From the NCBI GenBank assembly GCA_964019335.1, contig OZ025709.1, forward strand, positions 372,001 through 436,000: a stretch of 64,000 bases of DNA. Reading direction: 5' to 3'. The notes under the pieces are model-generated. The model was not told the origin of the DNA and did not search any database. It saw nothing but the letters and a program-made list of their open reading frames with translations. Both the position numbers and the translations under genes were made by a program. This DNA is from Diplonema japonicum (Eukaryota > Protista > Euglenozoa: Diplonemea). Shown piece by piece: positions 3,001 to 34,467 of this stretch; positions within the stretch are counted from its first letter, which is position 1; each line of letters starts with the position of its first letter.

Positions 3001-4420
3001 TCCCCCATCCTGTTGTTGAAGGACGCGACGTTCAGGGAGGTGATGACGAGAGGCTCGTTCTTCGGTAATGTGGGCGGTGGGCTTCTGTTCCTCTTAACAC
3101 CCGTCTTTGCACCCGTCCCTGGTCTCGCACTCGCGGCTCTCTCCGCATCACGCGTTCCTCTCATCATAGCCGGCTTCGGACCTGTCTTGCGCTTGGGACC
3201 GGGGTGCGGATGAACCCCCTGCGTCACGAGTAAGTCAAAATCCTCCTCCCTCTCCGACTTACCCGTGCGCTTCGCGCTTCATTTGCCGAAACAGCGAGTG
3301 CACGCCCAGGTTATGCACCCCGCACACTTCCTCGCGAAGGTGTCCTTTTCCTTCTGCTCCTTGCAGACACCGCAGCACCACACCGCTCCCTTTCGCGCTC
3401 CCTTCTCTGGGAACCGGTGTTTGCACGTCCTCGCGTGTTCGGCCATCGTCCGCTGCTCCGGGGACTCGGGTTCGTCCTCGTCGTCCTCCGCATTTCGCCG
3501 GCCCCCAGTGCCTTGATGAAGACCGGTCTCCCATGTCCATCCCGCTGAATGGAGGCGGTGCCCCAGCTTTCAAGACAAACGTCCTTGCATTTCCCCTCAC
3601 GAATGTAGAGGCTACCTCGCACTGCCACCCGCCCGCACGGAAGGCACCTAACAGTGGCCCTACTCTAGAGGTAGGGTGCACACCAGGACACTCGGTTCAC
3701 ACTCCACACTCGGTTTGACCGCAGCGGCGATACCCTTGCGAAGGCTTGCGAAGTCCCCCATCCCCCCGAGCCTCGTTACCCTGAGGTACCTCATCCTGCG
3801 TTCCTCCCCAATTAGGACTGGGAGGGGGAGCTTCAGGTTCTCCTCCAGATGCGTGGCATCGCCGTCCACCACCAGCTTCTTCCTGGTGATCAACACCATC
3901 CCGCAGCCCAACTGCTCGCCCCTGCTCGCGAGCTCCCTGTGCTCATCCAGCCACAGGTCGTACGCCTTCTGCGCGCCTTCCTCACACACCATTACCCCCT
4001 CCCCCTTTGGCTCTGTGAGGACGGGGCAACGCCAATCTGCCGGGTCCAGGCTCACCGCGCCCATTACCTTCCTTGCTGGCACCTTCGCCCACTTCAACAA
4101 AGGCTTTGTCACTGTCTGCTTCGACGCCTGTTTTCCTTGCTTCGCTTGTTGCTGTTGCTATTCCCTTGTCCCTGCTGTTGACGCGGCTTCGTCTGTTGCT
4201 TCTTCTGTTGCAGTTGCTGTTTCACCTTCTCCTGTCCTTGCACCTGCTTCTGTCCTTGCACCTGCTGCTGTTCACCCTGTGTGCCTGTTCCTCCCTCCAT
4301 GATGTCCAGGGCCGTCTCCAACAGGAGGACGGCCGGCTCTTGCCACATGACACCCTTCTTCGCTAGTACCCTTGCCCTCATGATGATGGCAGTTACCATG
4401 TCCTTCAAATTTCCATCCAT
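1..4420 (-). mobile_element. Degenerate non-LTR retrotransposon (LINE) with ORF1-like region, apurinic endonuclease and reverse transcriptase; frameshifted, continues past the window start
   Basis: APE motifs in 2148..3227 (ITSLNV, FCVQET, VLNVYCP, VIGDLN, SRIDRAL, SDH). RT motifs in 667..1368 (LDFAKCFD, GILQGCPLS, YADD). Coding frame is split over several ORFs (4109..4420, 3660..4112, 3259..3681, 2148..3227, 1375..2331, 1467..1877, 667..1368). Confidence 0.9.
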
Positions 4421-4541
4421 TTTTATAAAGGGGAGAAAGTGTTTTTTTTTTTATTATTTTTTTTTTTTTTTATTATTTTTTGTGTTTATAAAGAAAAAAA
4501 AAAATATGGGTCACCTCTCCGCTAGTTGTCACAAAAAACTG

Positions 4542-5206
4542 CCCGCAAATGTACCCCTACGTTCTTCTTCTTTCAATCGATTGTTATATGTACTTATAAA
4601 ATATGAAATATAGCGCGCATTCGACGACACTGATCAAGCGACTGGCACCTTCCGAAGAAGGGCCTCCCACGTCCGCCGGGTTGAGCAGAGGATGCCCCGG
4701 GGCGGCCGTTCCAGTCTGATCATGTCGCACTATAATATATGTTCTCATCTCCAAGGAGAAAAGAGGTTTTTTGCCCTCGTAGCTCGCCGGGCCAGCACTC
4801 TTACTTGCGTAAGGTCTTCGTGGTTCTTGGGGGGTGGCGCTGTCCCACATTATGCCACTGCAGCGTGGTGAAGAACAGCCAGTCAGTGGCCACGAAGTAG
4901 TGATCCTTCAAGGCTCTCATATCTCCGTGCCGCGTGAACTGCTGCCGTCTCTCGACGTCCCTCTTCGCCTTCCAGCCTTCCGAGTCATACCTGGCCATGA
5001 TCCACGTCTTGTCAAAGTCCAGGATGAGGGCGAACCGGACAAACTTCATGTGAATCCCGAGTTCCTTCGCGGTTTTAGGCTCTTCGCCGAGCACGTGTTT
5101 GCAGACCCGTATCATGGCTTCTGGCGTCCACTCCCCTTCCGCTTCGACGATCCCGGCCGTCGCCAGTTTCGTGTGGGAGAGCTTATCTTCCCGCAAATGT
5201 ACCCCT
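4542..5206 (-). mobile_element. Probable truncated insertion with broken unknown ORF, bounded by a 17-bp direct repeat
   Basis: CCCGCAAATGTACCCCT at 4542-4558 and 5190-5206. Coding-like interior (4801..5196, 4584..4850) with no recognised domain. Short GAA repeats at the minus-strand 3' end. Confidence 0.4.
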
Positions 5207-5450
5207 TGTCATCCCTTTGTGCCCCTCGTGGTGAAGTAACTTTAGAGTGTCGTGAAATAAAACCACTTACCTACCGCCAAGTAATGCTTTACCGACCTCT
5301 CCAGGTAACGGTAAAGTCATTACTTGTTGACAGTAAACAGCTATTTTTTTCATTAGGGAACAAACCAAAACGTATTGTATGAAGCTAATCTTTGTATCAA
5401 AGGAAAGAATCGTAAAGAAAACTGTGCCAACAGAATAGATATGTATGTAA

Positions 5451-6356
5451 TCACCCCTCTCGGAGGGCATCCAGCACAACGGAAGAAAGGTTGAGCATCG
5501 TATTTAAATTGGTGGTTTCTAATTTTTCGCACCCTGACAAGAAGCCATGACCAATGGAAGAAACATTGTTCATCGCTTTCAAATCGATGGTTTCTAGGTT
5601 TTCGCACTCATACATGAAGCCTTCACCGATGGAAGAAAGGTTGGTCATCGCTTTCAAGTCGATGGTTGCTAGGTTTTCGCACCCTGACAAGAAGAAATTA
5701 CCAATGGAAGAAATATTGATCATCACTTTCAAATCGATGGTTTCTAGATTTTCGCACCTATCCAAGAAGCAATGACCAACGGAATCAATGTTGGTCATCG
5801 CTTTCAAATCGATGGTTTCCAGTTTTTTGCACCCTGACAAGAAGCCATGACCAATGGAAGAAACATTGGGGAGGATGAGATCAACAGACGTCAGGTGCTT
5901 GCAATCTAGAAGAAAAGCATCGTCTATACTTACAACACAGCCTGTGGGGTTGGTGACAATGAGGAACCGAAGTCCAGAAGGAAGGTCACTGCTGCTCATG
6001 GACAAGACTTCGACAGGTGGAGAGTCCCCCACCTCCACCACCAGAACCAGCTCAGGGTCAGCTGACACAAGCCCCTCAAGCTCCGAAACCACATCTGAGC
6101 TCTTAAGCTCCTCCAGCTGAACGGTTCTCATCTTCGCCTCCACATGGACCACGCTGCCCTCCACGAGCCCAAGTTCCTGAACTTCCTCACCCCCGTTCCT
6201 GTCCAGGACCTCTCCCTCCCAGACCAATTTGAACTTGCCTTCGAGTAAACCAGCAGCACACCCCGCCTTCTTGTACAGGATCCCAATTGTCTCCGTCCCT
6301 GCCACTTCCACATCGTGAACCCCAGCTTTCGTCTTCACAAACACTGTGATGCTCAT
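5451..6356 (-). CDS. Ubiquitin-like domain + BspA-like 25-aa leucine-rich-repeat protein, copy 1 (301 aa)
   Basis: N-terminal ubiquitin-like pattern (ITVFVKT...ETIGILYKK...KLVWEGEVL...LGLVEGSVVHV). Repeats CxxLETIDLKxMxNxSSIGxxFLxx. Intact ATG..TGA. Confidence 0.85.
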   Translation of the reverse strand: MSITVFVKTKAGVHDVEVAGTETIGILYKKAGCAAGLLEGKFKLVWEGEVLDRNGGEEVQELGLVEGSVVHVEAKMRTVQLEELKSSDVVSELEGLVSADPELVLVVEVGDSPPVEVLSMSSSDLPSGLRFLIVTNPTGCVVSIDDAFLLDCKHLTSVDLILPNVSSIGHGFLSGCKKLETIDLKAMTNIDSVGHCFLDRCENLETIDLKVMINISSIGNFFLSGCENLATIDLKAMTNLSSIGEGFMYECENLETIDLKAMNNVSSIGHGFLSGCEKLETTNLNTMLNLSSVVLDALREG

Positions 6357-6899
6357 TTTTTCTTTTTTTTTCCTCTTCTTCTTCTCTTCTTCAATCCTCG
6401 ATCCCTCCCCCCACTTGAGATTTTATTTGAGGAAACTCTGCCCCCCCCCTCAGGCATAAAGTGCATCATTCGAGAAGCAGTATTGGCGGCCACCCATTGC
6501 ATGACCGGGCAACACATTACTGGGCATTATTAGATTTTATACATTTTATAAAAAACACGGGATAACACCCAAGGGACTGCAAAATAGCGCAGCCTGAAAA
6601 CAGTGCAGAAGTACCTAGTGAATATGCTGATGCTGGCTGATGCAACGAAGAAGATGGGGAATGTTTGTTTTTTTTGGGGGGGGGGAGAAACTTAGCATGC
6701 AGTGTAAATAACAAAAGAAACAAGGGGAGAGGGGAAAGGGGGAGTTCAAAAGGAAAGAGATTACACTATTAATGTGGACCGTTGTTTGTGCAAGACGTCT
6801 TCACCTACACGGGCAAGCTGCCTTTACTCTTTTTTGCAATAACAATTCTTTTCAAAGTTTGTATTTTTGTTCCAACAAAAAAAAACTCATATTAAAAGA

Positions 6900-7340
6900 C
6901 AACCCCACTGGAGGACAGCCTCTTGTGGTGTGAGTTCCTATCTATCAATGCTCCCCTTCTGGAGCATAGCCATGCTTTTCGTAGTTTCGACGCGGTCTTT
7001 CTTGTATGTCCCTTTCAACTCCTGTAGCTTTTGCGCTGTCTGTCTTGATGCGAAGATCGGTCTCCTGTTGAAGACTAATGCAGCCTTACCTCCGATCGCT
7101 GTGAGCGACTTGACCCTCTTGGTCCCGTCCGCAGGGAAGGGGCGCTCTTATCCGTCTCGTTCTGCACACTGAGTTGGCTCTCTCCACCAACAGCTTGATT
7201 CTGCGTGCCTTCCCCTGCATGCTGTAGACTCCCAGCGACTTACCGGTCGTCTCCTTGAAGTTGAGTCTGCAAGTTCAGCTGCCGAAACCTCCGAGTCGGT
7301 GTCGCCTGCTCTCTACCAGTGCCAGCTCTAGCTTCGTGCA
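6900..7340 (-). pseudogene. Decayed coding fragment, possibly a LINE post-RT relic
   Basis: Complex coding-like sequence with stops and frameshifts (KSLGVYS...RIKLLVER; KRVKSLTAIGG). No diagnostic motif. Confidence 0.25.
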
Positions 7341-7498
7341 AAAAAAGAATTTATTTTAAAATTCCCTTTTTTCTTGTTCTCACTTTTTTTTTTTTTTTTT
7401 TCTTATTTGGGGTAATTCACTTGGTCAAAAAAAAGTACTGAAATTCACTTACAACTCAAAAGGAAAAAAAAAAAATATATATATATATATATATGAGT

Positions 7499-7780
7499 TA
7501 AAGGAGGCCGGTGTTGGCGGCGCCCTGCACAAGAACTGTCTACTTGATTACACGCGCCGCGGCCGAGTTGTAGCTTCTTCTGCGTTCCGCGTCGTGTCCT
7601 TAATGCGTGCGGTATACAGCTCAACCCCAGTCGGTGCGTCCCGGGTAACCAAGATTCTGCGCTCGTGCAGTTTGCTGCCTGTTCGTCACCCTGAGCATCT
7701 GCATTAAGTTCTTCCACTCGGGCGCTACCGGTGATGACCGACGAGGAGGTCAACAGCGAACAACACATCTGATGTACTTC
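7499..7780 (-). mobile_element. Short non-coding dispersed element, family A, 5'-truncated copy with HDV-like ribozyme core lacking the 5' strand of P1
   Basis: 7541-7780 is near-identical to 19661-19902. Retains ACC-UCCUCGUC-GGU, CAUCACC-GG, P4 and ACGAA. Confidence 0.8.
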
Positions 7781-7804
7781 AAAAAAAAAAAAATAATAAT
7801 AATA

Positions 7805-9377
7805 CTGTAAAACGAATAATGTCGGACGGAAAAACTCCCGGACACCAAAAAAACCCGGACATTTTTCCGTCCGGGAGTTTTTCTGGGAAGAAGTTTTTTT
7901 ACTTAAGGGGGGGTAGCAGCTCCCACCACGTTTGCCTGGAAGGGCTTTATTCCTTGTGCAGAGCCAAAATGTTTACCCTGCGTGGCAGTTTGAATTTTTC
8001 TTCCCCTTTCAATGCACCAACAAACAGCACCCACGGGATCTTTAACTTCTCATAAACCCGTACTTCTTTCGTCAAATTAACCAGTTCGACTACCCAAGGC
8101 ACGTTGAGCAGCTGGCTTGTGAGGGGCCCAACTTTGGTGCTGACACCCCCGGCCAGCTCACCCCCGAGAGGTGGAGGAGATAAACTCCTTACACCGGGCC
8201 GAGAAGGCCAGTACAAACCCCCGAAAGCAGCTTGGCGGCCTCTGCCTCGGTCAGAAGACGGCAGCAACAGGTTCAACAGAGCCCCCAGTTTCTTCCAGAC
8301 GGAAATACTGGACGTTGCTATTCACCCTACCACACCCTGGCCGCCGCGACGCCGTGATAGCAGCGTATCGCCCAATACGGGATTTAGCATCCTTCGGGGG
8401 CTGAAAGGTTTTTGCTTGAGTCGATAGGTAAAACGGGCTTGGCGAGCTTATCCCAGCACAACAAATATGCACCTATGCAGAAGGGCTGCTGCACGCCAAT
8501 CCAGCCCGAAAGACAAACCTGGCAGACTTTGGTGGAGCACTGTCCTTTTCCACTGACTAGGCTGACAAAACTTTGCAGCAAGAAAGACAAAAGCCGCAAG
8601 CCACCTCCGGAAAGCCCGGAAACGAGAAGGACAACGAGAGGGCACGCTGTTTCACCATGGAATTCAGGTCCATAATCGACACCCATAAAGTGTCCGTGGC
8701 TTGGGGGACAAAACGGGCTATAACCGAACAGTTGGCTGTTCCTTGGCTGGATGGGTTGCAACTTAAATACAAAGGCAAAGCGGAAACGCAACCGGCAGGG
8801 ATTATCCGTGCCCCGGTCAAGCACCTGCCCGTCGAATGGAGCCTAACGGCATCGCCCAATCATTGGGCTAATTATGATACTCGGTATCTGGGTTACGGAG
8901 CTGTTTCTTCCTTTTTGCTATAAATCATTGATTCCCATGGTTTTGCCGAACGGGCCGATTCTGCTGCTTGTCGGCGACCACAACTCTCACACGACCTATG
9001 CCTATGGGTTCGTAGAGTGGTTCGCAGGCGTAAACGTGCACATTGCTTTTGTCCCCCTGGGCTCACCTACATGGTTCAACCGATGGATATTGGGTTGAAC
9101 GCAGCTGTAAAGCATCTATTAAGAAAGGTAGTAGGCCACACGAAGGCTCGACAAGCTGATTGCCTCAGGGGTAGCAAGGGGGGACAAAGATGCAGAAAGG
9201 GAACCCTGGGGGTTTCTTCGCGCGGTTGCCGTTTGCAGCCCAGGCCAGTATAGTATGTAGGTAGTAGTGGACCAGGCACCCTGACGGCCTTACCTAAAAA
9301 AAACTCCCGGACGGAAAAACTCCCGGACGCCAAAAAAACTCGGACATTTTTCCGTCCGGGAGTTTTTCGTTTTACAG
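7805..9377 (+). mobile_element. Degenerate pogo/Tigger-like (Tc1/mariner superfamily) DNA transposon
   Basis: TA at 7803-04 and 9378-79. TIRs CTGTAAAACGAA...TTCGTTTTACAG with internal CCGGAC repeats. Broken DDE transposase motifs LLLVGDHNSH and PPGLTYMVQPMDIGLNAAVK. Confidence 0.85.
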
Positions 9378-9567
9378 TAATAATAAAAAAAATAAAAAAG
9401 AAGGGGAAAAAAATTTTTTATCAGCCTTTAAGCTGTAAAAACTATCATCTCCTCTCATATTCGCTACATCTCTATTCCCTGTACTTTTACTTTAACTTAC
9501 ATTTGAAGAAGCGAATTACATCAGTTTGAAAGGGGTACAAGTTCTTTTCGGGGAAATAACTACTGGA

Positions 9568-10635
9568 TCACCCCTCTCGTCGGAGGGCCCTATTACCTCT
9601 TTTACCAATGAAAGAAAGATTGGTCATCGCATTCAAGTCGATGGTTTCACGTATTTTGCACCCTGCCAAGAAGAAATCACCAATGGAAGAAAGATTGGTC
9701 ATCGCTTTCAAGTCGATGGCTTCTAGGCTTTCGCACTCATACAAGAAGTAACCACCAATGGAATAAAGATTGGTCATCGCTTTCAAATCGATGGTTTCTA
9801 GGCTTTCGCACCCTGACAAGAAGAAACCACCAATGGAATTAAGATTGGTCATCGCTTTCAAGTCGATGGTTTCTAGGTTTTCGCACCCTGACAAGAAGCT
9901 ATCACCGATGGAAGAAACATTAACCATCGCTTTCAAATCGATGGTCTCCAGTTTTTTGCACTCTGACAAGAAGCAATCATCAATGGAAGAAATATTGGTC
10001 ATTGCTTTCAAGTCGATGGTTTCTAGGTTCTTGCACCCATACAGGAAGCAAACACCAATGGAAGAAATGTTGGTCATCGCTTTCAAATCGATGGTTTCTA
10101 GATTTTCGCACTCATCCAAGAAGCGATGACCAATGGAAGAAACATTGGGGAGGATGAGATCAACAGACGTCAGGTGCTTGCAATCTAGAAGAAAAGCATC
10201 GTCTATACTTACAACACAGCCTGTGGGGTTGGTGACAATGAGGAACCGAAGTCCAGAAGGAAGGTCACTGCTGCTCATGGACAAGACTTCGACAGGTGGA
10301 GAGTCCCCCACCTCCACCACCAGAACCAGCTCAGGGTCAGCTGACACAAGCCCCTCAAGCTCCGAAACCACATCTGAGCTCTTAAGCTCCTCCAGCTGAA
10401 CGGTTCTCATCTTCGCCTCCACATGGACCACGCTGCCCTCCACGAGCCCAAGTTCCTGAACTTCCTCACCCCCGTTCCTGTCCAGGACCTCTCCCTCCCA
10501 GACCAATTTGAACTTGCCTTCGAGTAAACCAGCAGCACACCCCGCCTTCTTGTACAGGATCCCAATTGTCTCCGTCCCTGCCACTTCCACATCGTGAACC
10601 CCAGCTTTCGTCTTCACAAACACTGTGATGCTCAT
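9568..10635 (-). CDS. Ubiquitin-like domain + BspA-like LRR protein, copy 2 (355 aa)
   Basis: Same N-terminus as copy 1 (ATG at 10635 after an A-rich run). Two more LRR units than copy 1 and a related C-terminus (ALRREG). Confidence 0.85.
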   Translation of the reverse strand: MSITVFVKTKAGVHDVEVAGTETIGILYKKAGCAAGLLEGKFKLVWEGEVLDRNGGEEVQELGLVEGSVVHVEAKMRTVQLEELKSSDVVSELEGLVSADPELVLVVEVGDSPPVEVLSMSSSDLPSGLRFLIVTNPTGCVVSIDDAFLLDCKHLTSVDLILPNVSSIGHRFLDECENLETIDLKAMTNISSIGVCFLYGCKNLETIDLKAMTNISSIDDCFLSECKKLETIDLKAMVNVSSIGDSFLSGCENLETIDLKAMTNLNSIGGFFLSGCESLETIDLKAMTNLYSIGGYFLYECESLEAIDLKAMTNLSSIGDFFLAGCKIRETIDLNAMTNLSFIGKRGNRALRREG

Positions 10636-10727
10636 TTTTTCTTTTTTTTTCTTCCTTCTCTTCTTCAATCCTCGACCCCCAACCTGAAATTTTATTTGAG
10701 GAAACTCTGCCCCCCCCCCCCCCCCCC

Positions 10728-12055
10728 CAGGGCTATACAAGCATTTTTTTTGAAAATAAGGAAACGGAAACGTTTCCTTACTTTAAAGCCGTTTCCTTAA
10801 GAAGGAACACGCTTCCTCTGAAAAAGGAAACGCGTTTCCTTAACCCTTATCCGCCCAACGACTCATTTTGGGTTTGTTCCCTGTATCCATCCAAACCAAA
10901 GTCTTGGACCGGTTTCCATGAAAAAAAGATGGGATGGAAAGATTTAGAAAATCTGCGCTAAATGCGCTATTTGTACCCACCCATCTGAAACTTCATAGCT
11001 TCAACCCAGAACAGGGGGTACCGAGACACTGGGTGACACCCAAAATATGGGTATTTTCCTAATTTTTCTTGATTTTTTCCCTCTGAATTTCTTTTTGAGT
11101 CACTCGCGGACAGTTCCCAGCCAAAGAACAGGGGGAAGAGGAAGAAGCAGCCTCTATCACATCGTCGATGTTGACAGCTTAGAAAGAAGGAGATGAGGAA
11201 CTACCTTGAGGAATGGGGGGTCGATGAATCGATGGTTCAAGAGGGGAGAGAACCAAACCGCCGGCACATGGCAAGATGGCTATGGATTCGTGCCAGACTT
11301 CGTTTTTTCAACGCCACGCAGTACTTTTTTTTCAGCTATTCAACGACGCAGTGATCGATTACTTGATCGAGCAAATCAAAGTACACGAAGCGAAGATTAA
11401 CCAAGTAACCTCAGAACGGAAGGAATGAGTTTTTGAAGTGGATTGAGTTTGTCATACTCATGGGGAACAGGCTCCTCTCCGCATGCGAGAACGAAGGTGA
11501 TCATTTGTATATTGACAACTGGTATAGCGGTGGTAGGTGTTCAGCTCTTCCATGAGTTGAAGGGCGTGGGGATATACTGCTGTGGAACGATTCGCAAAAA
11601 TAGGCGGGATCAATGCACCTCCATGGCCCGAAAACATTTTAAACATTTAGTGGAATGAACGCAGATTTTCAAGATCTTTGTTTTGAGACAGATGTGCAAG
11701 AACAGAGGCAGAATAGCCACAGGACAGGCCTGAAAAGGAAGATTTCTGGGTGCTGGTAAGGCTGAAATCACTGTTGTGGGACCACCTACTCATGACCCCG
11801 CTTCTTATTGATCGAAATCACAAAGTTTTTAGTGGAATGAACGCAGATTTTAAATACTTTCAAATGCGTACCTCGAACCAAAAGATAACTTCAAGACCAG
11901 CATGTCCGGCCCATGCCAACAAGGGACCAAAAGCGGGAAAATCCAAAAATCAATTAACCCCCCCCCCCCCCCCGGGCTGATGAGGGTTAAGTATCTGGAA
12001 AAAAAAAATAAGGAAACGGAAACGGAAACGGAAAACGTTTCCCCCGTTTCTTGCC
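10728..12055. mobile_element. hAT-like MITE with GGAAAC/AAACGG subterminal repeats, split by a piggyBac insertion
   Basis: Starts CAGGGCTAT. AAGGAAACGGAAACGTTT motifs occur on both sides of the piggyBac. Related short copy at ~57166-57261. Confidence 0.45.
10844..11986 (+). mobile_element. Internally deleted piggyBac element
   Basis: TTAA at 10840-43 and 11987-90. 13-bp TIR CCCTTATCCGCCC / CCCTCATCAGCCC. Transposase relic GDHLYIDNWY...LFHELKGVGIYCCGTIRKNR near 11500-11605. Confidence 0.85.
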
Positions 12056-12123
12056 AGTTTTGCCTCCAATTCATATATGAAAAATTAACTCATTTTTATT
12101 TTCTTTTTTTTTTTTTAAAACAG

Positions 12124-12960
12124 TCAAGCCCTCTTCCGAGAGAGGAGCTCCGGGCACAGGGCGTCCGCAATATTCCCAACCAAGCCGATGTTATAGATGT
12201 TTGTGGCGTGCTGAGCGCGAAGTTTCGCCCTCTTCATCGATTCGTACGCTGTCTCGTTCATGAAAACACCCAAAAGGGTGGTCCAGAGGAGGATACCTAT
12301 GAGGATCGAAAATACCACACAACAAGAGATAATTAGCAGGGTGGCTGCCCCGGTGGGGGTGTGGAAGAACCTGTTCAAAGAGTTCTGGATAGAAGCCAGC
12401 CGCGACAAGTGATTAGACCGCGAAGGGTGGATGTAAGAGATGGTACCACCTATGACAGACGCGAAGACATGGAAATTCTCCAAATGGCAAAGCTGTTTTT
12501 CGTTGTACTTACAGGCGTTCGTGTAGATAGAAATATATGTAAGATAGGCGCCGTATGTACAAATGAAAAGCTTGAGGCCAAGAAAGCCTATGAAGATTCG
12601 CAGATTTTTAGAACCCACGTCGTTTGCGATCCATATGCAGTGGTGATCAAAGCGTTGCACACACCGGCCGCACTCCCAGCAGTGTTTGGTCCTAGCAGCC
12701 CTTACAACTTCGCATTCTTCACACATTCTTCCTTCTTCATATACTATATGGTCGTACTCATAGTCGGCTGTGCCCTCTCCCTTGATCTCTCCCGGGTTGC
12801 TCCATGCAGCCCACGCGTGCAGCATCACAGAAACCCCAGCGATTACTTTTCTGCTGACGTTCCCCTCTTCCACCTCTATTAATGAGAAATACATCACCAT
12901 CAATGTGTATGTGATACAGGCCAATGTGATTGCTGGCCCAGTGGATGGCTGCGACTTCAT
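12124..12960 (-). CDS. DHHC-family palmitoyl acyltransferase (278 aa)
   Basis: CxxC...RTKHCWECGRCVQRFDHHCIWIANDVG motif, four hydrophobic segments, NETAYE and NIYNIG C-terminal motifs. Confidence 0.95.
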   Translation of the reverse strand: MKSQPSTGPAITLACITYTLMVMYFSLIEVEEGNVSRKVIAGVSVMLHAWAAWSNPGEIKGEGTADYEYDHIVYEEGRMCEECEVVRAARTKHCWECGRCVQRFDHHCIWIANDVGSKNLRIFIGFLGLKLFICTYGAYLTYISIYTNACKYNEKQLCHLENFHVFASVIGGTISYIHPSRSNHLSRLASIQNSLNRFFHTPTGAATLLIISCCVVFSILIGILLWTTLLGVFMNETAYESMKRAKLRAQHATNIYNIGLVGNIADALCPELLSRKRA

Positions 12961-13244
12961 TTTTTTTTTTTTTTTTTTTTTCCCTCCTTCTTATTTTTTC
13001 CCACTTTTCTTTTTTTCCCCTTTTTTTTTTTGAAGGTTTGGGGGAAAAAAAAAAAAAAAAGGAGAAAAAAAAAAAAAAAAAAAACGGTCATTATTGTACC
13101 TTCGGCACACCGATAGGGGCGGTGGGGGGGGGGGGGGGGGAGGGGAGTTTTTATTATTACCCATCAAGGCTTTTTTTTTTAAAAAATTGATAAAAATGGT
13201 GAGGTGGGGAAGAAAATAAAAAGGGGACCCCCCCCCCCCCCAAC

Positions 13245-13472
13245 TCACTCCTTTTTCACTTCTTCCTTTTTCACTTCCTCCTTTTTCATTTCTTCCTTTT
13301 TCACTTCTTCCTTTTTCACTTCTTCCCTTTTCACTTCTTCCCTTTTCACATCTTCTCCACAGGATTCTTGGGTTCTATTTCTTCTTCGCTGTCGGATTCT
13401 TTTGCGTTTTCTTGCTCCATCCTTCTCCTTCGGTTCCTCCGGAATTTTCATATCCTTGAAGTCGAAACACAT
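13245..13472 (-). CDS. Short basic/charged ORF ending in (VKKEE)n; possibly the tail or fragment of a larger gene
   Basis: Frame stays open upstream to ~13568. No recognised domain. Confidence 0.3.
   Translation of the reverse strand: MCFDFKDMKIPEEPKEKDGARKRKRIRQRRRNRTQESCGEDVKREEVKREEVKKEEVKKEEMKKEEVKKEEVKKE
13248..13352. repeat. 15-bp tandem repeat, ~7 units (encodes VKKEE/VKREE)
   Basis: Units of TTCTTCCTTTTTCAC with variants. Confidence 0.85.
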
Positions 13473-14287
13473 AGCCGATAGTGCTTTGAGACATATAGGA
13501 GAATATCGGCTTTGAACATATGCAGATTGAGCAAGTTGTTTGTACTGGTCACTATCGCTGGGGTCTGAACTAGCCTGACGATGGCAGCCTTGGATAAGAA
13601 CCTAGAAGGGATTTTTTCCCCCCCCCCAAATATGAGAACACTTTTTTTGGCACTTCCGAAAATTTGTTTCGATTATTTGAGCAAAAAAAAAAAGATGTTA
13701 TTGAAGGGAACCTGCAGTACAGGATCGCCTAAAAAAAGGGCAGCATGCAACCATAGGAAGATGACATATATGGTGCTCAAGCGCACTTGTGACCCGGTGG
13801 GTACCTGGGTACAACCCAGGGTCGGGTTACTGTTAAGTACTAAGCGAAAAATATGGTGTCGCATAGCCCCCGAAAATCCGGTTTTTACAGCATATATATA
13901 TATATATATTTTTTTTTTTTTGGCATTTTCAAGGGATTCTAAGGGATTTTGGCCTAACATGGCCTTTTTTTCAGAAAAACCAAGTCTTAACACTTGCCCA
14001 TCTGCTGAGGTTTTTTTTTCTTTTTTTTTTTTTTGCACTCACTAAAACTTAAAAGGTAAAAATTTTGCTTTTTTAAGGGGGGTTTAAAGGGATTTTAGCC
14101 TTAAATAGGCCAAAATGGCGCTTTAAGGGAAAGTACAGCCCACCCAAAATGACCCCAAAAGTTTCACAGCGTGCAACGAAGCACGAACTACCTTTTAAAA
14201 AAATGGGGTCTGGGTTATTTGTAACTTCCAAAATTGAATCGTTTACCAAAAAAAAAAAAAAAAAAAAAACCAAAAAAGAAACCATTC

Positions 14288-14328
<41 letters not shown>

Positions 14329-14354
14329 ATTCTGTTAACTGAATCGTCCAATAC

Positions 14355-14830
14355 TACCTATAGGCGCTCTTGCGAGCCAACGTGCCAAAATAAAATAGGC
14401 TAAACTCGCACACTGGTGTGAGCTTCAAGGGAGCTAAACGTTTCAGACATTGCGTGCCACACCCATAGGCCTCACGACCGGGGAGGGGGACATTTATCTT
14501 TCGCCCGTAAGCTAGAGTGCGCATGCATCCCCAGCTCGCTTTGGGAGGTGTTGCCAACACCTGGGTCGCTTCGCGGTCCGACCTGCTGCCCAATTCAAAG
14601 CGCGGTTGCGGTGAATCCAAGCCCCCTAAGCATCGACACGAATAACAAAGGGGTTTGTTACGCCGGGATATCTTGTTCACCAATGCTCCATACCCCCCTG
14701 TTGCCAGTTCGCCGGATGAGCATACTGCTGGGACTTCCACTCATCCGTTGCCCGGTGGGTACCACGAGGAGGTCAGCAACAATTCTATACTTTTGGTCAC
14801 GCAGGGCCTGTTCTACATTTAGTATAGTCC
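14355..14830 (-). mobile_element. Short non-coding element, family B, headed by an HDV-like ribozyme
   Basis: GC-rich non-coding island between homopolymer tracts. Its 5' part is homologous in fold and in P4 sequence to family A. Confidence 0.6.
14699..14830 (-). ncRNA. HDV-like ribozyme core (family B); 5' strand of P1 missing
   Basis: P2 UGUUGCUG/UGGCAACA; P3 ACC/GGU; L3 UCCUCGU; P1-3' ACCCACC; GGGCAAC; P4 CGGAUGAG/CUCAUCCG; GGCGAA (catalytic-position C at 14711). Confidence 0.8.
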
Positions 14831-14951
14831 AAAAAAAAAAAAAAAAAAAAAAAAAAAACATGTTTTTGCACACGTGTTTTAAAAATAAAAAAAACGGCGA
14901 GCATTTTTGACCTATATGGTGCTCAAGCTACGACAGAGCTGCTTGTTCTAC

Positions 14952-15313
14952 TTAGAAATTTAACGGGGGGGTCATTTGTGTTGACATTTTTTTTCCCGTT
15001 CTGCTTGAGCTCCATACCGATAATGAAACAGGTGTCGCATGTTCCAACTTCTGGGCGTAGATCCCCATGGCTTCAAAGTTCGACTTCATCATGGCAGCTC
15101 TCATCTTTATCACATTCCTGTCATCACTATTGGGAACCATCTTTTCAAAGAGATTATCACAATCGTCCCAGCGCTTTAAAGGATGGTGTTTGAACAGCAA
15201 GCTGAGGTAAAAGTACTCTCTTCTTTTAATAGGGTGGCTCGACAGGAGTGTCAATCCTAGTCTCATAGGGCACTTTTTCAGTTTGCTGATCCGCTCCTTG
15301 ATATTGAACTGTG

Positions 15314-15358
<45 letters not shown>

Positions 15359-15612
15359 AAACGTACCCTCGACCCCAAGCTCTTAAACACCATCTTCTTC
15401 GTTCTATTGATATACCTTGCATCTTGGAACGCCACATCCCATACTTTTCTGGCCATGTTCGGTGTTGGCTGCAACCCTAGCTTCATCATATATTGACACG
15501 AATCTTCGATTTCGGACAACTTTGTGAGTCCCACAAACCTTTCGATGGCCATCTTACTTGGCTCACGGGTCTTTGCCACTTTGGCACACCGGACAATTGT
15601 TCGAGACAACAT
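14952..15612 (-). CDS. Hypothetical protein (~200 aa), probable mitochondrial presequence; 1 intron
   Basis: Starts MLSRTIVRCAK. GT-AG intron 15309-15366 joins the two ORF-track frames in phase. Confidence 0.65.
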
Positions 15613-15732
15613 TTTCCCCCCTCCTCCCACCTTTTCGTTTCCCTTTATTTTTTTTTTTCGCACTTAAGGGGGGGGGTAAAAATAAAACGTGGGAACACAT
15701 TTCTTTTTTTTTTTTTTTTTTTTTTGCCTCTC

Positions 15733-18700
15733 TCATAAACAACCCATTTCTTGGTTTGCAACCGCTGCTTGTTTATACCTGGACAACGGGAGGCCAAATG
15801 CCTTGACGAACTCGTGTTGGACCCTCGATTTCAACGAAGGTGTGACCTTGACTTTCGGATAGTGATCCGCATCAATTGGTTGCGGTGCAGAAGGTATCGA
15901 AGAAGGTGTCTTCACCATCATGTTTGAAACCGGGGCGAAAACGGTTTGCGATCGTGCCACGGGTCCGGTAACAGGATGGCGAAGGACCTCGGGGACCCAA
16001 AAAGAAGGAAGCGCTAGTTCTCGCGACGCAGCAGCAGCAGCAGCAGGGTAGTCGACGATACCCCGAAGAGGAAGCGGCATCTCCATCTCCACAGCCGCCT
16101 CACTGTTTGCAACAGAATAGTCAACAGAGAGTGACTCACCCGTTACAGTTTTCACTGTTTGCCGCAACACCTCAGTGAAACCGTCTAGCGCCGACTGAAG
16201 CATCCAAAACTCAACCGCCCTGCTCAGTTCCGTGTTGATCACAGCGCGCAACACTTCACAGTTCAACAGTACAGCCGTTTGTTGGAGCGACACTACAACG
16301 GTTCGCATCTCCTTCCGTATTCCTTCATTCAACCCTACAACAGGCTGCTTCAGAGTTCCCAACAACCGAGGGACGTATCCGTGAAATGACTTTCCTTGAG
16401 GCATATTCGAACCGGGGAAGATGTTCCTCAACCGTTTCATCGAGTCTGTGACTGTCTGTACATCGTGCTTCATCGGAGGAGCAGGGACCGCCACAGGCGT
16501 TCTGTCCACAGAAGGAATCACCGGTGAGGATGATTGCAATGGAACCAACTGCCCCTGAGACGGACATCTAGGTATAACGTTCAACCATTTTGGTAAATAA
16601 ACGTCAGCGGACACATCATCAGCACCCATCGTGTTTGAAAATCCACAACAAGCACACACCGTCCGTTCCTTCCACCATTGTGTAGGAGGAGGGAGAGGGA
16701 CCGATGGTAGTGGTAACGGAAGCGATGTGGATGGAGGTGGTGTTGCAGACAACGGTGCAGGGGTTAGGCATGTTATTTCGCTTCCCGGAGGCGTGGTCTC
16801 GGGTTGCGTCATGGTTCCGATGTCTTTACGGGTGATGCATGCGGAGTTGGTTCCCTCCCCTTCTTCGTACGATAACGTTCTTTGCCGGACGATTTCGTTT
16901 TTCTTGTTCTCGCTGCCGTCGTTCAAGACAGCCACGGCGCCTGCCGACACAGCTTGCGTCATGGCCTTTTCGACAAGGTGCTGCGTCGCAACCAAACTGT
17001 TATCAGCGGATGGTGTCGGGGCGATCACAGGTTCCTTCTTGATTACGACAAGTAATGGTGTCATGATTGTGTGTTCGGTTTCCGTCAACAGTGTTGGTGG
17101 GGTGATGGTGTCCCTCATCGTGGTTATCGTGGTTTCCTCAACACTCTCCTCGCTTCTGAAGCTGGCCCCTCCCAATGATAGCACGCTTGGCGACCTGTCA
17201 GCAAATGAAGTCGATTGTTGCCTTGACACCACCGACGATGTCCGGTAAAATGTCCCTTCTACCTCTCCCAAAAGGTTTTGCCGTTGTTGTTGCTGTTGCC
17301 GCTGCTGCCTGGAATGGTATACTGTCCGTTTCTTCTTGGCAGTGGGCAGAACGGAGCTTTTCTTCATTAGAACTTCGTTCTCCGCCTTGATTTTTTCCAT
17401 GTCCTGGATCTGTTCGGATAGCTTCTCGATCTTTACCTGTTCCTCCTTGAACTCCTCGGCGGCCTTGGTGTCACCTGTTGAGATTTTGCTTACAATCGAG
17501 TAGACGGTTTTGGGAAGCCTTCCTTGAAGGTGCCCCCATCTCGATCTCCATTCTTTCCGTTCGAGCTCCCACCGGGCCTTGTCGATGTTGTGAGATTTTA
17601 TCACTTCACGGGCTTTGTGTCTGTCTTTGACAACTCGCGCTCGGAGTCTTTTGTCGATCCGTTCCAAGGAAACCACCAATGACATGACGTCGGTCAGTTC
17701 AGGTTCCTCGCTCTCATGGTCGGGTCTGGGGGGCTCGCCGTCTTCAGTGTCGTAGTTTTTTAGTATAATGCCGTACTTGTCCACGAGGATGCGAACTTTT
17801 CTGGTGAGGAGGTTCACGTCCGCCTTCAGCTCTCTGATTTTGACGGCTGGAGGAGGTTCTGCTGTTGCTTCCTTATCGTCGCCGGTGTCCTCCCCCGGGA
17901 GCTCGAGGCCGTTCTTTTCAATGTGGTTGCGAAAGTTTCCGAGGAGGTGCTCCAGGCTGTCGATTTTGATCTGCGATGCGATGCACTCCGCCCGCCACGC
18001 AGCCGTTTCAACTTTGACAGTTGTCAGTTGAGTTTGCATTGAATTCACTTCTGCGATATATGCTGGGTCGCTCTCTCCCAACAGTGGAGGGTTGTCGTTA
18101 AACTCGTGGGGCATGACACGGAGCTTCCTGGGTCCGGAGGGTGATGAACTGAGTGTTGAATAGTGGGTACGATCTTCCACAGCGCTGACGGCTTTTAGGG
18201 TGGCGATTTGAGAGCGGAATTTCATTGTGGAATCCTCCAGACTGCGCTCGAGATTTTTGAGCTTTTCAGCTTTTTTCAGGTTCTCATCGCGAAGGTCTTC
18301 TACCACCTCATCTTGGGTTTGGATGCTGGCGGTGAGTTCCTCGTTCGTTTGTGTAAGGTTCGCGACGGTTTCCGTTAAGCTTTTCACGTCGAGGCTGCTT
18401 TGCAACTTCTCCCCGTTCAGTCGGAGAAATTCGTTTGTAAACCTTGTGGACAGGTCTTGCATGTCATTCTCAAGAGACGTGCACCTTTCCTTGAATTCTT
18501 CAAGTGTTTCCATTGCAGCGTTCAGCTGGTTTTGAACCTCGATTTTCTGTGCTTCTTCGCTCTTCCATCTGTGAAGAAGTTCTTGCAACTGATGTTTTGG
18601 GTCGTCCGTGGGCTGGCTGGTGTCACCGCCGTTTCCCCCGTTCGGCTCCATAATGTTTAGAAAATCGAAGAGAGAGAAGACGCCAACGTCAACATTCTCA

Positions 18701-19137
18701 GAACAGTTAGTTTTAGCGGTCAGGTTTTCGCGTAGAATGCAGACTTCTTGATATAAGGTTTTTCTGATGTAGTTTATGATCTCGGCTCTGCGTTGTAAAG
18801 TGCCTTCTGCAATTCTTCTTCTGGATTCTTGTCTTTCGATTTCCAGTTTTCGTTCGTAAAGTCGTTGCTTCAAGACCGAGATCTGCTGTTGCAAGCGGTG
18901 CACCTCGTTGCCTCCCGTCAGCATCTCGGCCAGTTCGTCTCCATCGTCGAAGGGCACCCCTGCTACCAGATCGCTTAAAACCCGTCCTATTCTTACAATG
19001 CCCCTTTGCACGATGCTCAGCGAGCCGCTGCCCTCGTTCATGCGAATTTCCTCTTCCACGCACTCGCAGTGTGCCTGTACACGTTCCGCGGCTTCGATGA
19101 CAAATTCCCGTAAACTTTCGTAAGGGGGCAGTTCCAT
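15733..19137 (-). CDS. Large coiled-coil hypothetical protein (1134 aa), Pro/Thr-rich C-half
   Basis: Long uninterrupted ORF. ATG at 19137 follows an A-rich run. Heptad-rich N-half. Confidence 0.85.
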   Translation of the reverse strand: MELPPYESLREFVIEAAERVQAHCECVEEEIRMNEGSGSLSIVQRGIVRIGRVLSDLVAGVPFDDGDELAEMLTGGNEVHRLQQQISVLKQRLYERKLEIERQESRRRIAEGTLQRRAEIINYIRKTLYQEVCILRENLTAKTNCSENVDVGVFSLFDFLNIMEPNGGNGGDTSQPTDDPKHQLQELLHRWKSEEAQKIEVQNQLNAAMETLEEFKERCTSLENDMQDLSTRFTNEFLRLNGEKLQSSLDVKSLTETVANLTQTNEELTASIQTQDEVVEDLRDENLKKAEKLKNLERSLEDSTMKFRSQIATLKAVSAVEDRTHYSTLSSSPSGPRKLRVMPHEFNDNPPLLGESDPAYIAEVNSMQTQLTTVKVETAAWRAECIASQIKIDSLEHLLGNFRNHIEKNGLELPGEDTGDDKEATAEPPPAVKIRELKADVNLLTRKVRILVDKYGIILKNYDTEDGEPPRPDHESEEPELTDVMSLVVSLERIDKRLRARVVKDRHKAREVIKSHNIDKARWELERKEWRSRWGHLQGRLPKTVYSIVSKISTGDTKAAEEFKEEQVKIEKLSEQIQDMEKIKAENEVLMKKSSVLPTAKKKRTVYHSRQQRQQQQQRQNLLGEVEGTFYRTSSVVSRQQSTSFADRSPSVLSLGGASFRSEESVEETTITTMRDTITPPTLLTETEHTIMTPLLVVIKKEPVIAPTPSADNSLVATQHLVEKAMTQAVSAGAVAVLNDGSENKKNEIVRQRTLSYEEGEGTNSACITRKDIGTMTQPETTPPGSEITCLTPAPLSATPPPSTSLPLPLPSVPLPPPTQWWKERTVCACCGFSNTMGADDVSADVYLPKWLNVIPRCPSQGQLVPLQSSSPVIPSVDRTPVAVPAPPMKHDVQTVTDSMKRLRNIFPGSNMPQGKSFHGYVPRLLGTLKQPVVGLNEGIRKEMRTVVVSLQQTAVLLNCEVLRAVINTELSRAVEFWMLQSALDGFTEVLRQTVKTVTGESLSVDYSVANSEAAVEMEMPLPLRGIVDYPAAAAAASRELALPSFWVPEVLRHPVTGPVARSQTVFAPVSNMMVKTPSSIPSAPQPIDADHYPKVKVTPSLKSRVQHEFVKAFGLPLSRYKQAAVANQEMGCL

Positions 19138-19143
19138 TTTCTT

Positions 19144-19177
<34 letters not shown>

Positions 19178-19620
19178 AAGGACAGCAAAGGGTAGGTGGT
19201 AGAAAAAAAAAATAACAATAATATTGCATGCCAAAACTGTAACGGAAAGAAGAGAACAAAAAAAAAAAAAAAATCCCACTGGCCAGTTTAGCACATTCTA
19301 GAGAGAGGTTGTATCTTAGCGTCTCTAGTGCTTTTTTTGTTTTGTTTTTTTGTTTCCTAAAAAAACACGGGGGGGGGGGGAAAGAAAACCAGAATAGCGA
19401 ATAGGGGGGTCACTCTTTTCTTTTTTTTTCCTCTTTAATACTGTGGAGAGAAGATTGTTGGAAGAAAAATATAAAAAAAAATAAGAAGAAACGAAAAGAA
19501 ATGAACAGCTGAATATCAAACGGAGGATATTTATTTCCCCCCCCCCCGGGAATAACAAAATAAAAAGTAAAAAAAAACTCGACGAAAAAAAAAAGAAAAA
19601 AAATGGGGCTTTGATTGCAA

Positions 19621-19929
19621 CACTAGGTGGCGTTAAGCGTGCAATGAAGCACGAACTACCTACTTGATTACAGGGGGCGCTCCTCGGCCGAGCAGTAGCT
19701 TCTTCTGCGTTCCGCGTCGTGTCCTTAATGCGTGCGGTGTGCTCAACCCTAGCCGGGGCGTCCCGGGTAACCAAGATTCTGCGCTCGTGCAGTTTGCTGC
19801 CTGTTCGTCACCCTGAGCATCTGCGTTACGTTCTTCCACTCGGGTGCTACCGGTGATGACCGACGAGGAGGTCAACAGCGAACAACACATCTGATGTGCT
19901 TCTTATATTTCCATGTTATCCCCACCACC
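19621..19929 (-). mobile_element. Short non-coding dispersed element, family A, copy with intact 5' end (SINE/SIDER-like)
   Basis: Related copies at 7499-7780 and 57506-57596. Its 5' boundary coincides with ribozyme G1. Confidence 0.8.
19796..19929 (-). ncRNA. Complete HDV-like self-cleaving ribozyme (predicted)
   Basis: P1 GGUGGUG(19929-23)/CAUCACC(19858-52); J1/2 stem GGAUAACA/UGUUGUUC; P2 GCUGUUG/CAGGCAGC; P3 ACC/GGU; L3 UCCUCGUC; P1.1 GG (19851-50); P4 CACCC-GAG/CUC-A-GGGUG; J4/2 ACGAA with C at 19807. Confidence 0.85.
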
Positions 19930-20071
19930 TAAAAAAAAAAAAAAAAAAAAAAAAAAACACACAACACAACACAACACACAACGACCACACACAAGCACCG
20001 CCTCTATTATCTAATCGAACAATTCTTTTTAAAAACTCTTTTTATTTTATTTTTTATTTTATTTTATTTTT

Positions 20072-33280: not shown

Positions 33281-34431
33281 CCCTTTTCATACTCGTAGCA
33301 TGTGAACAAGCATGCAGAGAAGCACTCCTTGAGGTCATTGTCTGTGAAGAACCTGACCAGGTTCTCGACGACCTTCTTGTCGCCGGACTCTGCGGCGGTG
33401 CTCATGGCGTCCTGGTACAGCTTGTCCCTCTTGGAGAGCTCGATGGCTTGCATGTACTTCCCGTTCTTCTTGTACAGCCACGCCCCGAGCCTCCTCATCT
33501 CAAGGAGATCATGCTGGTCAAGCTCCAGCGCAAGGTCCAGCTGGTCGACCTGATCGTACAGCTCAAGGGACTTCCTGAGGGAGTCGTAGTCCTCCTCCTC
33601 AATGTACAGCCTGTTCAGTGCCGAGTTCACCTTCTTGTGGTTCGCCTCCTGAACGGACTCCAGGTACGGCCTGATGACGATAAGCAGGTGCAACCCTGTC
33701 GCCTTGCTCTTCTGCGTCACCTCTGTGACCACACGCTCCGGGTCCACCCTCTTGATGACTGTGATCAGAAGGTCGTTCACGAGGTCCGGGTGCTCCTCAA
33801 GGTAGAAGCCCACACCGTTGTAGCACAGCTCCAGGGACGAGACTCTGGCGATGGCGTCCTTGAAGATCTCGTGGTCCCACGACAGGACGGAGTGGTCCAT
33901 CATGACGGAGCAGGCTCTGTCCCACTCCTCGTTCTTGCAGTGCACGTACCTGATCTCGGCCCAGTGGTGGTACTGCTCGCACACGGTCACAAGCTTGTGG
34001 GCGTTGAGCCTGTTCTTCCACAGCTTGATGTGCTCCATGAGCTTGTCGTGCTTGTACTTCGCGTACAAGATGCCAAGCTCGGTGAACATCCCGACGTGTG
34101 CCCTCTCGCTGGACAGGCCCTGCTTCAGGAGCCCGATCAGCTCCTCGACCCTCCCGCGTGACTCGAAGAAGAAGATCAACCCGTCAAGCTCGTCGGCTAC
34201 CACAATCACGTGCTGCGCGGCAATAGCAGCAAGCCTGAACTCCTCAGCATCAACACACGCGTAGCACACCTGTGCATTGTGTACATTACTCTTAGCAGCA
34301 TACCTCCTTCCACGTGTCGACAGAGTTGGTCCTTCCTGCAGCGTCAATCGCCAGCTGGAACTGGCCGAGCTTCATGTGCGTCTTGGCCAAGAACGGGAAG
34401 TTCGACACCTAGTAGTAGTGTGTTGTGACGT

Positions 34432-34467
<36 letters not shown>

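Follow-up and report, generated by a model that had tools for sequence, protein, structure and literature searches.

A candidate HDV-like ribozyme at the 5' end of an abundant short retroposon family in Diplonema japonicum

Ribozymes that resemble the one of hepatitis delta virus (HDV) define the 5' ends of retroelements of the R2, RTE and L1Tc/ingi types and of a few short derivatives. Such ribozymes are found at the 5' ends of the short internally deleted elements (SIDEs) of R2, of L1Tc/NARTc and of SIDERs, and a large joining segment between helices P1 and P2 (J1/2) is tolerated in cleavage (PMC3414825, PMC3185411, PMC4035085), as is known from the R2 ribozymes (PMC3414825). The trypanosomatid form, Pr77, is a 77-nt signature with CCACC at positions 16-20, a downstream promoter element (DPE) CGTG at +25 to +28 and promoter activity (PMC4748587), while in elements of the Pr77 type P1.1 has a single pair (PMC3185411) and the tail is poly(A) (PMC12278014). 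Among kinetoplastids and diplonemids, the papers found by literature search describe HDV-like ribozymes only from trypanosomatid retroelements, and the transposable elements of D. papillatum are said in its genome paper to still await rigorous description (PMC10161547). The subject of this report is a stretch of 64,000 nt of the Diplonema japonicum genome (GCA_964019335.1, contig OZ025709.1, positions 372,001 to 436,000), referred to below as the window. On its minus strand, a 134-nt HDV-like module begins at position 19929 (G1), where a 345-bp non-coding repeat, here named family A, also has its first base. The module is probably a 5' HDV-type ribozyme which frees the RNA of the family A retroposon from read-through transcripts.

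A complete double pseudoknot of the HDV type could be drawn on the minus strand from 19929 to 19796, each part being extracted by coordinate:

19796..19929, minus strand: HDV-like module of family A, predicted to be cleaved 5' of G1 (19929); homologues in families B and C
19923..19929, minus strand: 5' strand of P1, GGUGGUG, pairing 7/7 with 19852-19858, including one G.U
19880..19922, minus strand: J1/2 insertion of 43 nt, holding a 6-bp hairpin at 19885-19899 with loop CAG
19873..19879, minus strand: 5' strand of P2, GCUGUUG; its partner is 19796-19803 (7 pairs and one bulged G)
19859..19872, minus strand: P3 ACC/GGU around L3 UCCUCGUC (L3 = 19869-19862)
19850..19858, minus strand: 3' strand of P1, CAUCACC (19858-19852), then the GG of P1.1 (19851-19850)
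19809..19846, minus strand: P4 hairpin, CACCC-GAG / CUC-A-GGGUG, 8/8 pairs and one bulged A
19804..19808, minus strand: J4/2, ACGAA, whose C at 19807 is the candidate catalytic base
19796..19803, minus strand: 3' strand of P2, CAGGCAGC, pairing as CAG(G)CAGC, directly after J4/2

All 27 proposed pairs are standard pairs. An earlier note on this window had listed every element of the HDV fold in order on the minus strand, with a P1 of 7 bp, P2, P3 ACC/GGU, L3, a CC/GG P1.1, P4 and a J4/2 carrying C at 19807; coordinate extraction recovered each of these at its place, the only correction being to the stem in J1/2, which is 6 bp long (19899-19885) and not 8 bp. P1.1 is formed by the CC of L3 (module positions 62 and 63) and GG (79 and 80). 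The features expected of the HDV class are present in the form of a P1 of about 7 bp with G1 as the first base of the repeat, a 3-bp P3 with an L3 of 7-8 nt and a P1.1 of two C and two G (likewise in families B and C, described below), a P2 which crosses P1 as a pseudoknot together with a P4 hairpin, and, directly before the 3' strand of P2, a J4/2 with a candidate catalytic C and purines after it. P4 appears in both the minimum free energy (MFE) and the centroid folds and P1 in the centroid fold. A G1.U wobble at the base of P1 is frequent in HDV and CPEB3 and is not demanded of the HDV-like class; it is present in family C and is replaced by G1-C in families A and B.

The genomic and antigenomic HDV ribozymes and CPEB3 (RF00094 and relatives) share with the module the order P1-J1/2-P2-P3-L3-P3'-P1'-P1.1-P4-J4/2-P2', an L3 of the UCCUCG type and the C-G-A-A before the 3' strand of P2, to which family C adds the G1.U. 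Families A and B differ from them in having G1-C and a long J1/2, and the setting here is the 5' end of a retroposon, as against a viral rolling circle or an intron. R2 and the R2-R1 SIDEs of Drosophila (PMC3414825) also carry an HDV-like ribozyme at the exact 5' end, cutting from a host co-transcript, as is predicted for family A, and R2 likewise has a large J1/2 loop between P1 and P2. Further likenesses to R2 (PMC3414825) are non-autonomous derivatives made of a ribozyme head and a 3' end (the SIDEs), a few extra bases at 5' junctions (0-2 in R2), and changes between relatives which are compensatory in P1-P4 or fall within J1/2. However, R2 and its SIDEs occupy a single site in 28S rDNA, whereas the more than 1,300 copies of family A are spread over T-rich tracts that lie between protein genes; families A, B and C have bodies which bear no relation to one another, and the host is a euglenozoan with spliced-leader (SL) trans-splicing.

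L1TcRz/Pr77 (PMC3185411, PMC4035085, PMC4748587) likewise places an HDV-like ribozyme in the first bases both of long interspersed nuclear elements (LINEs) and of the short non-coding elements derived from them. The trypanosomatid hosts resemble the present one in polycistronic transcription and trans-splicing, and many of the copies are intergenic or lie in 3' untranslated regions. When compared by the published motifs, family A was found to have AUGGA at 16-20 and UAAG at 25-28, and the absence of both hallmarks (CCACC at 16-20, CGTG at 25-28) agrees with the statement in the earlier note that the 77-nt ingi signature is not matched. Family A differs further from Pr77 in its two-pair P1.1, its HDV-like L3 and CGAA, its 43-nt J1/2 insertion and its T-rich ends. 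On these comparisons it is not a Pr77 element.

The module belongs to a repeat whose other parts, and whose second representative in the window, are as follows:

19604..19795, minus strand: family A's non-coding body, with ...AAAGCCCCA at its end and no relation to the B and C bodies
19585..19603, minus strand: tract rich in T (8 T, C, 10 T), either 3' tail or target sequence, whose length and interruptions vary among copies
19931..19957, minus strand: upstream run of 27 T, then A at 19930; target-site pyrimidine tract, outside the element
7530..7780, minus strand: second family-A-like copy, 5'-truncated at position 28 and without the 5' strand of P1; directly after a T-run, with a different 3' region

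The genome (62.5 Mb in 132 contigs) was searched with 19560-19960 as the query, which returned 1,469 first-look candidates; the 40 scored were 92-100% identical. With the 3' 141 nt alone as the query there were 1,311 first-look candidates, of which 40 were scored and 34 matched it at 100% identity along its full length. The copy-number check proposed in the earlier note thus gives a figure of 1,311-1,469 first-look candidates genome-wide. Exact-word counts over the genome gave 315 copies of the first 24 nt of family A and 483 copies of a 24-nt L3-P1' core. The 30 copies fetched, which were the best-scoring ones, are 98-100% identical over 345 bp, and all 30 start at the same G, with flanks which are unrelated save for their T-richness. 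Complex sequence does begin at G1 after a U-run, as had been claimed, the run in the window being 27 T followed by one A. In about 57% of the copies genome-wide (99/171, reverse strand), at least six T come within 4 nt of G1 on its upstream side, a frequency which the fetched sample overstates, its query having contained the T-run. The T-run is separated from G1 by 0-4 variable bases, which in most cases are A, AA or CA.

Family A has no long open reading frame (ORF) of its own. No tRNA was detected by ARAGORN in positions 1-20000 of the window, and no Rfam family was found anywhere in the window at gathering score. The description of a ribozyme-headed family resembling a short interspersed element (SINE) is supported, the repeat being short, non-coding, dispersed and very abundant, but it lacks the tRNA, 7SL or 5S head of a classical SINE and, having no RNA polymerase III head, is a SINE in the loose sense only. 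Among 31 family A copies, frequent variants occur at position 32 (C/U opposite G, in the J1/2 hairpin) and position 85 (A/G opposite U, in P4), each alternating between Watson-Crick and wobble pairs so that pairing is kept, and the sole variable site in P2 is the bulged G.

A locus named L006 (1207-1865, minus strand) has two family A copies arranged head to tail with just a T-rich tract between them; cleavage at both ribozymes would free an RNA of unit length. Older copies, 83-92% identical, were also observed (L053:967-1101, other fragments in L053, and L052:2165-2258). Their differences are mostly C-to-T and G-to-A at CG sites, the catalytic C included, in a pattern which looks like CpG decay.

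Two further families allow the helices to be tested by comparison. The copies concerned, and the strands of the three helices which vary, are:

14323..14830, minus strand: family B copy with a homologous module, 5'-truncated, the first 4 nt of P1 (GGUG) missing
L040:1054-1498; L016:249-681; L032:1-339 (minus strand): family C copies with a compact 76-nt HDV-like module (L040:1054-1129) and G1.U
P1: A GGUGGUG/CAUCACC; B GGUGGG/CCCACC; C GGGGACC/GGUUCCU (G1.U)
P2: A GCUGUUG/CAG(G)CAGC; B UGUUGCUG/C(U)GGCAACA; C GUUUCC/GGAAAC
P4: A CACCC.GAG/CUC(A)GGGUG; B CGGAUGAG/CUCAUCCG; C UUGUG/CACAA

Family B is about 527 bp when full and has 78 candidates in the genome. P1 cannot be drawn in the copy in the window because its first four bases are missing; full copies begin (ca)GGUGGGA, and 12 of these start at G1 with unrelated flanks. 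Family C, of about 445 bp, was met by chance in the flanks of fetched loci and has a J1/2 of 3 nt only. In BLAST among the families, A and B share 73.5% identity over 68 nt (the ribozyme core), C shares none, and the remaining matches are T-runs only. In each of the three families the module starts at the family's first base after the T-run. A table of pairs across the families was made by hand in a script, since MAFFT misaligned P1 and L3 between them; pairs are formed in 27/27 cases in A, 27/28 in B and 23/23 in C, so that 77 of 78 cells are standard. Two-sided changes were found at P1 positions 3, 5, 6 and 7 and throughout P2 and P4. The parts which do not vary among A, B and C are P3 ACC/GGU, L3 UCCNNGU, P1.1 CC/GG and the C-G-A-A before the 3' strand of P2. 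The helices are accordingly backed by covariation among relatives, as judged from three lineages in a hand-made alignment, and the 5' ends cluster at G1 in 30/30 of the best family A copies; the absence of these two features was among the grounds on which the earlier note would have given up its proposal. The P4 loop motif GAGUGGAAG is identical in A and B though the P4 stems differ. Two observations on family C stand apart from this comparison: in the L016 copy the catalytic C is changed to U, and at L040 the 3' T-run of a family C copy contains an inserted copy of family B.

A covariance model (R1) built from family C alone matched about 95 near-identical family C copies genome-wide at >=94 bits, with about 45 weaker matches. 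On family B the match was weak (15 bits, P1 unaligned), and the model does not reach family A. No R1 match was found just upstream of a listed reverse transcriptase (RT) domain.

The direction in which the element is read was examined from its truncated and fused copies. Truncated family B copies keep the far end and are without the ribozyme end, starting at query positions 118 to 372; loss of the ribozyme end in truncated copies of both A and B is the mark left by reverse transcription that starts at the 3' end and is not completed. The upstream T-run belongs to the target, as four of five truncated B copies still lie directly after a T-run. In at least six places, family A carries the spliced leader's 3' part joined to its G2 in sense orientation:

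L052:1481-1830 (G000:C1:890255-890600), C2:842508, C13:292872, C24:264928, C33:55480 and C62:171637: SL-family A fusions, with the junction ...UUUAUUG, then GUGGUGGGGAUAAC

By their junctions, these SL-fused copies are retrocopies of trans-spliced element RNA. The A at 19930 and G1 together make an AG behind a pyrimidine tract, which can act as a trans-splice acceptor. In the SL-fused L052 copy a 23-nt deletion removes L3, P3' and P1', while the core of the SL-fused C2 copy is intact, a sample too small to serve as a natural test of ribozyme activity. Of the 22 A loci and 16 B loci compared, 19 and 15 respectively (34/38) have their longest flanking open frame on the strand of the element. From 28.5 to 64 kb of the window, every ORF of >=300 aa lies on the minus strand, which is also the strand of the elements; these ORFs include those for clathrin heavy chain, dynein heavy chain, Nic96 and Sec23/24. 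Family A and B elements sit in sense orientation within one-directional gene clusters.

The same observations bear on the possibility that the element lies on the plus strand and ends in the poly(A) at 19930-19957, the minus-strand module then being an antisense artefact of a poly(A) retroposon. Read on the plus strand, the element does end in ...CCACC, T and 27 A, which resembles the 3' tail of a LINE or SINE. However, a homopolymer run equally long stands at the other end, 0-4 variable bases separate the T-run from G1, and the truncated copies would have lost their supposed 3' end, which is the opposite of target-primed reverse transcription. The spliced leader is moreover fused in sense to the minus-strand start, and co-orientation with genes holds on the minus-strand reading. 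A plus-strand element is accordingly regarded as very improbable. Even slightly less credence is given to chance, that is, to a G+C-rich repeat which happens to fit a permissive HDV drawing. In favour of chance, a loose descriptor gave 5 matches in shuffled sequence of 287 kb on both strands (about one per 115 kb), and the MFE z-scores are unremarkable. A stricter descriptor, which required the HDV fold and a T-run before G1, gave 0 matches in five shuffles of the 287 kb scanned and in the real sequence yielded only families A and C. P1 has no free parameter, since it must join the first 7 nt to the 7 nt after P3, and its probability of pairing by chance under uniform base use is about 0.001 (A), 0.013 (B) and 0.001 (C). 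The fit moreover begins at the first base of the repeat in each of three families whose bodies are unrelated, and HDV families are the best Rfam matches of family C. That the modules of B and C are recent copies of that of A is argued against by their different helices.

A further explanation, considered unlikely but the most serious of the three, is that the module is chiefly an internal promoter starting at G1, as Pr77 is in L1Tc, or a structure bound by the LINE RT, with the HDV-like drawing a by-product or the ribozyme inactive. Pr77 of L1Tc is both promoter and ribozyme (PMC3185411, PMC4748587), the P4 loop GAGUGGAAG is kept between A and B without a known ribozyme role, and family A has G1-C in place of the G.U wobble and no Rfam match. 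A DNA promoter, however, has no need for three RNA helices to change in a compensatory way, or for the L3/P1.1/CGAA core to stay invariant between families of unrelated sequence, and the hallmarks of Pr77 (DPE and CCACC) are absent from family A (PMC4748587). Nor is a promoter needed, as the elements already lie in sense inside transcribed clusters.

Several results weigh against a 5' HDV-type ribozyme at G1 and were set against the evidence above. The sharp 5' boundary at G1 is also expected from an internal promoter or transcription start at that base, and families A and B have G1-C instead of the wobble of HDV. The finding of no substitutions in J4/2, P1 and P3 among 31 family A copies is partly a selection effect, as these are the best-scoring copies. 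The pairing of family A exceeds what chance gives: when its 3' partners were slid by 1-3 positions only 6-14 pairs formed, compared with 27 as drawn, and shuffled sequence gave 9.9 +/- 2.5 pairs with a maximum of 18 in 2000, but these controls are partly circular for P2 and P4, which were drawn on the same sequences. The search with HDV models, suggested in the earlier note, failed to support family A: no HDV family was matched by Rfam in the window at the gathering threshold or in 19700-20000 at a permissive E-value, where there were just weak chance matches to snoRNA and miRNA families, and RF00094 run over the whole genome gave nothing at E<=10. The lack of an HDV match for family A is expected in view of the 43-nt insertion at a point where the model has none. 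The consensus line of RF00094 carries CCUCCuCGcUGG and GGCuAAuGgGaC, which resemble the core of family A (L3, P1.1 and the CGAA before the 3' strand of P2). The best Rfam match of family C is HDV_ribozyme (RF00094; 31.7 bits, E 0.0022 in a small search), spanning the whole model with G1 falling on its first paired G at the model's cleavage site, and the second best is HDV-F-prausnitzii (RF02682; E 0.016). Both are below the curated cut-offs, that for RF00094 being 50 bits, and on these scores the likeness to HDV is one of class and not of membership in a curated family. Nested MFE values were no better than those of shuffled sequences (z of +1.25, -0.34 and -0.13 for A, B and C), which is uninformative for a double pseudoknot, and the MFE structure of family C favours a competing hairpin. 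Finally, at least one SL-fused copy has an intact core, so that cleavage, if it occurs, is not always complete. In a metagenome scan with a pattern specific to A and B, 0 matches were obtained.

It is proposed that family A is transcribed within the read-through RNA of a host gene cluster, as its orientation and the SL-fused retrocopies suggest. Self-cleavage is predicted from the fold: during transcription the RNA would fold into the ribozyme, which would use the C at 19807 to cut directly 5' of G1, leaving an element RNA which begins with a 5'-OH G. The endonuclease and reverse transcriptase of a LINE may then copy this RNA into new sites by target-primed reverse transcription. Insertion into T-rich tracts of the coding strand would give both the flanking T-runs and the sense-strand bias, a pattern which is observed and for which this mechanism is put forward. 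The module would account for the 5' cut only. The 3' tails are probably target sequence for the most part, given their variable length and, in several copies, the same interruptions as in the upstream tract; they are perhaps primed on a short U-rich RNA end, and this is the least certain step.

The genome, which holds hundreds of LINEs of the APE-RT-RNase H type, has at least 625 RT candidates. Of these, 150 were scored, and the majority fall in open frames about 1,000-2,100 codons long. APE and RT plus RNase H domains were detected in three of the four RT-locus ORFs scanned (RT loci L054, L059 and L061). LINE activity appears to be recent, with several families present. In the search for a partner LINE, T-runs were all that A, B and C had in common with 12 RT loci, which do not reach the LINE ends.

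It is conceivable, though on balance doubtful, that a wider system exists, in which several unrelated short retroposons, and possibly the APE-RT-RNase H LINEs too, use HDV-type ribozymes to free their 5' ends from polycistronic RNA polymerase II transcripts and integrate specifically into poly(T)/polypyrimidine tracts of the coding strand. In that case the 3' end of the RNA, rich in U, would be primed on the A-run of the opposite strand, the mirror of poly(A)/T priming in L1. If so, well over 1000 self-cleaving sites would lie between genes, each beside a fresh polypyrimidine-AG trans-splice signal, and the elements would shape both the ends and the starts of host mRNAs.

Release of the 5' end by a ribozyme is a known strategy, of which family A is probably a new and very abundant instance. 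What is new is a candidate HDV-like ribozyme with a canonical core, not resembling Pr77, in an SL-trans-splicing euglenozoan outside the trypanosomatids. At least three short retroposon families, unrelated to one another and recently active, begin with the HDV-like module, and family A alone has more than 1,300 copies. Should the ribozyme be active, the near-identical HDV-like ribozymes of this genome would rank among the largest natural sets of their kind, nearly all of them lying in sense within co-transcribed clusters. The genome would offer a system for asking how retroposons without a promoter gain defined RNA ends, how self-cleavage competes with trans-splicing at one site, given the SL-fused copies, and whether insertions alter the 3' ends of host mRNAs, as has been proposed for Leishmania SIDER2.

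The 3' half of the spliced leader is of the kinetoplastid/diplonemid type. Its 5' half, ACCAACGAUUCUAAAGCUA (L051-L053), differs from all trypanosomatid AACUAACG types and is two changes from the 'Euglenozoa 14' type (PMC3795323). The host may be diplonemid-like, and the leader of diplonemids is probably of that type. The clathrin heavy-chain gene at 34300-35650 of the window (minus strand) has short GT-AG introns, two of which are mostly poly(A) on the coding strand. The different SL type and the short introns identify the host as an SL-trans-splicing euglenozoan which is not a trypanosomatid.

Different elements are adjoined by a recurring motif, GGGCCGUUGCUAACCACUUCGUUCCUAUCAUAGUGA, which is about 40 nt long and has a T-run after it; it is found at L008 on both flanks of a family A copy and at L043 and L048 downstream of family B. 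A 63-nt flank match at L008 was considered as a target-site duplication and set aside as ambiguous, the sequence itself being a dispersed repeat. The 19-nt 3' part of the spliced leader has 217 occurrences, on most contigs and often near contig ends, and is fused to various sequences other than SL genes (e.g. L051:1470-1520 and L053:1501-1545, minus strand). These dispersed parts suggest that there are many retroposed trans-spliced RNAs or SL-associated elements in this genome.

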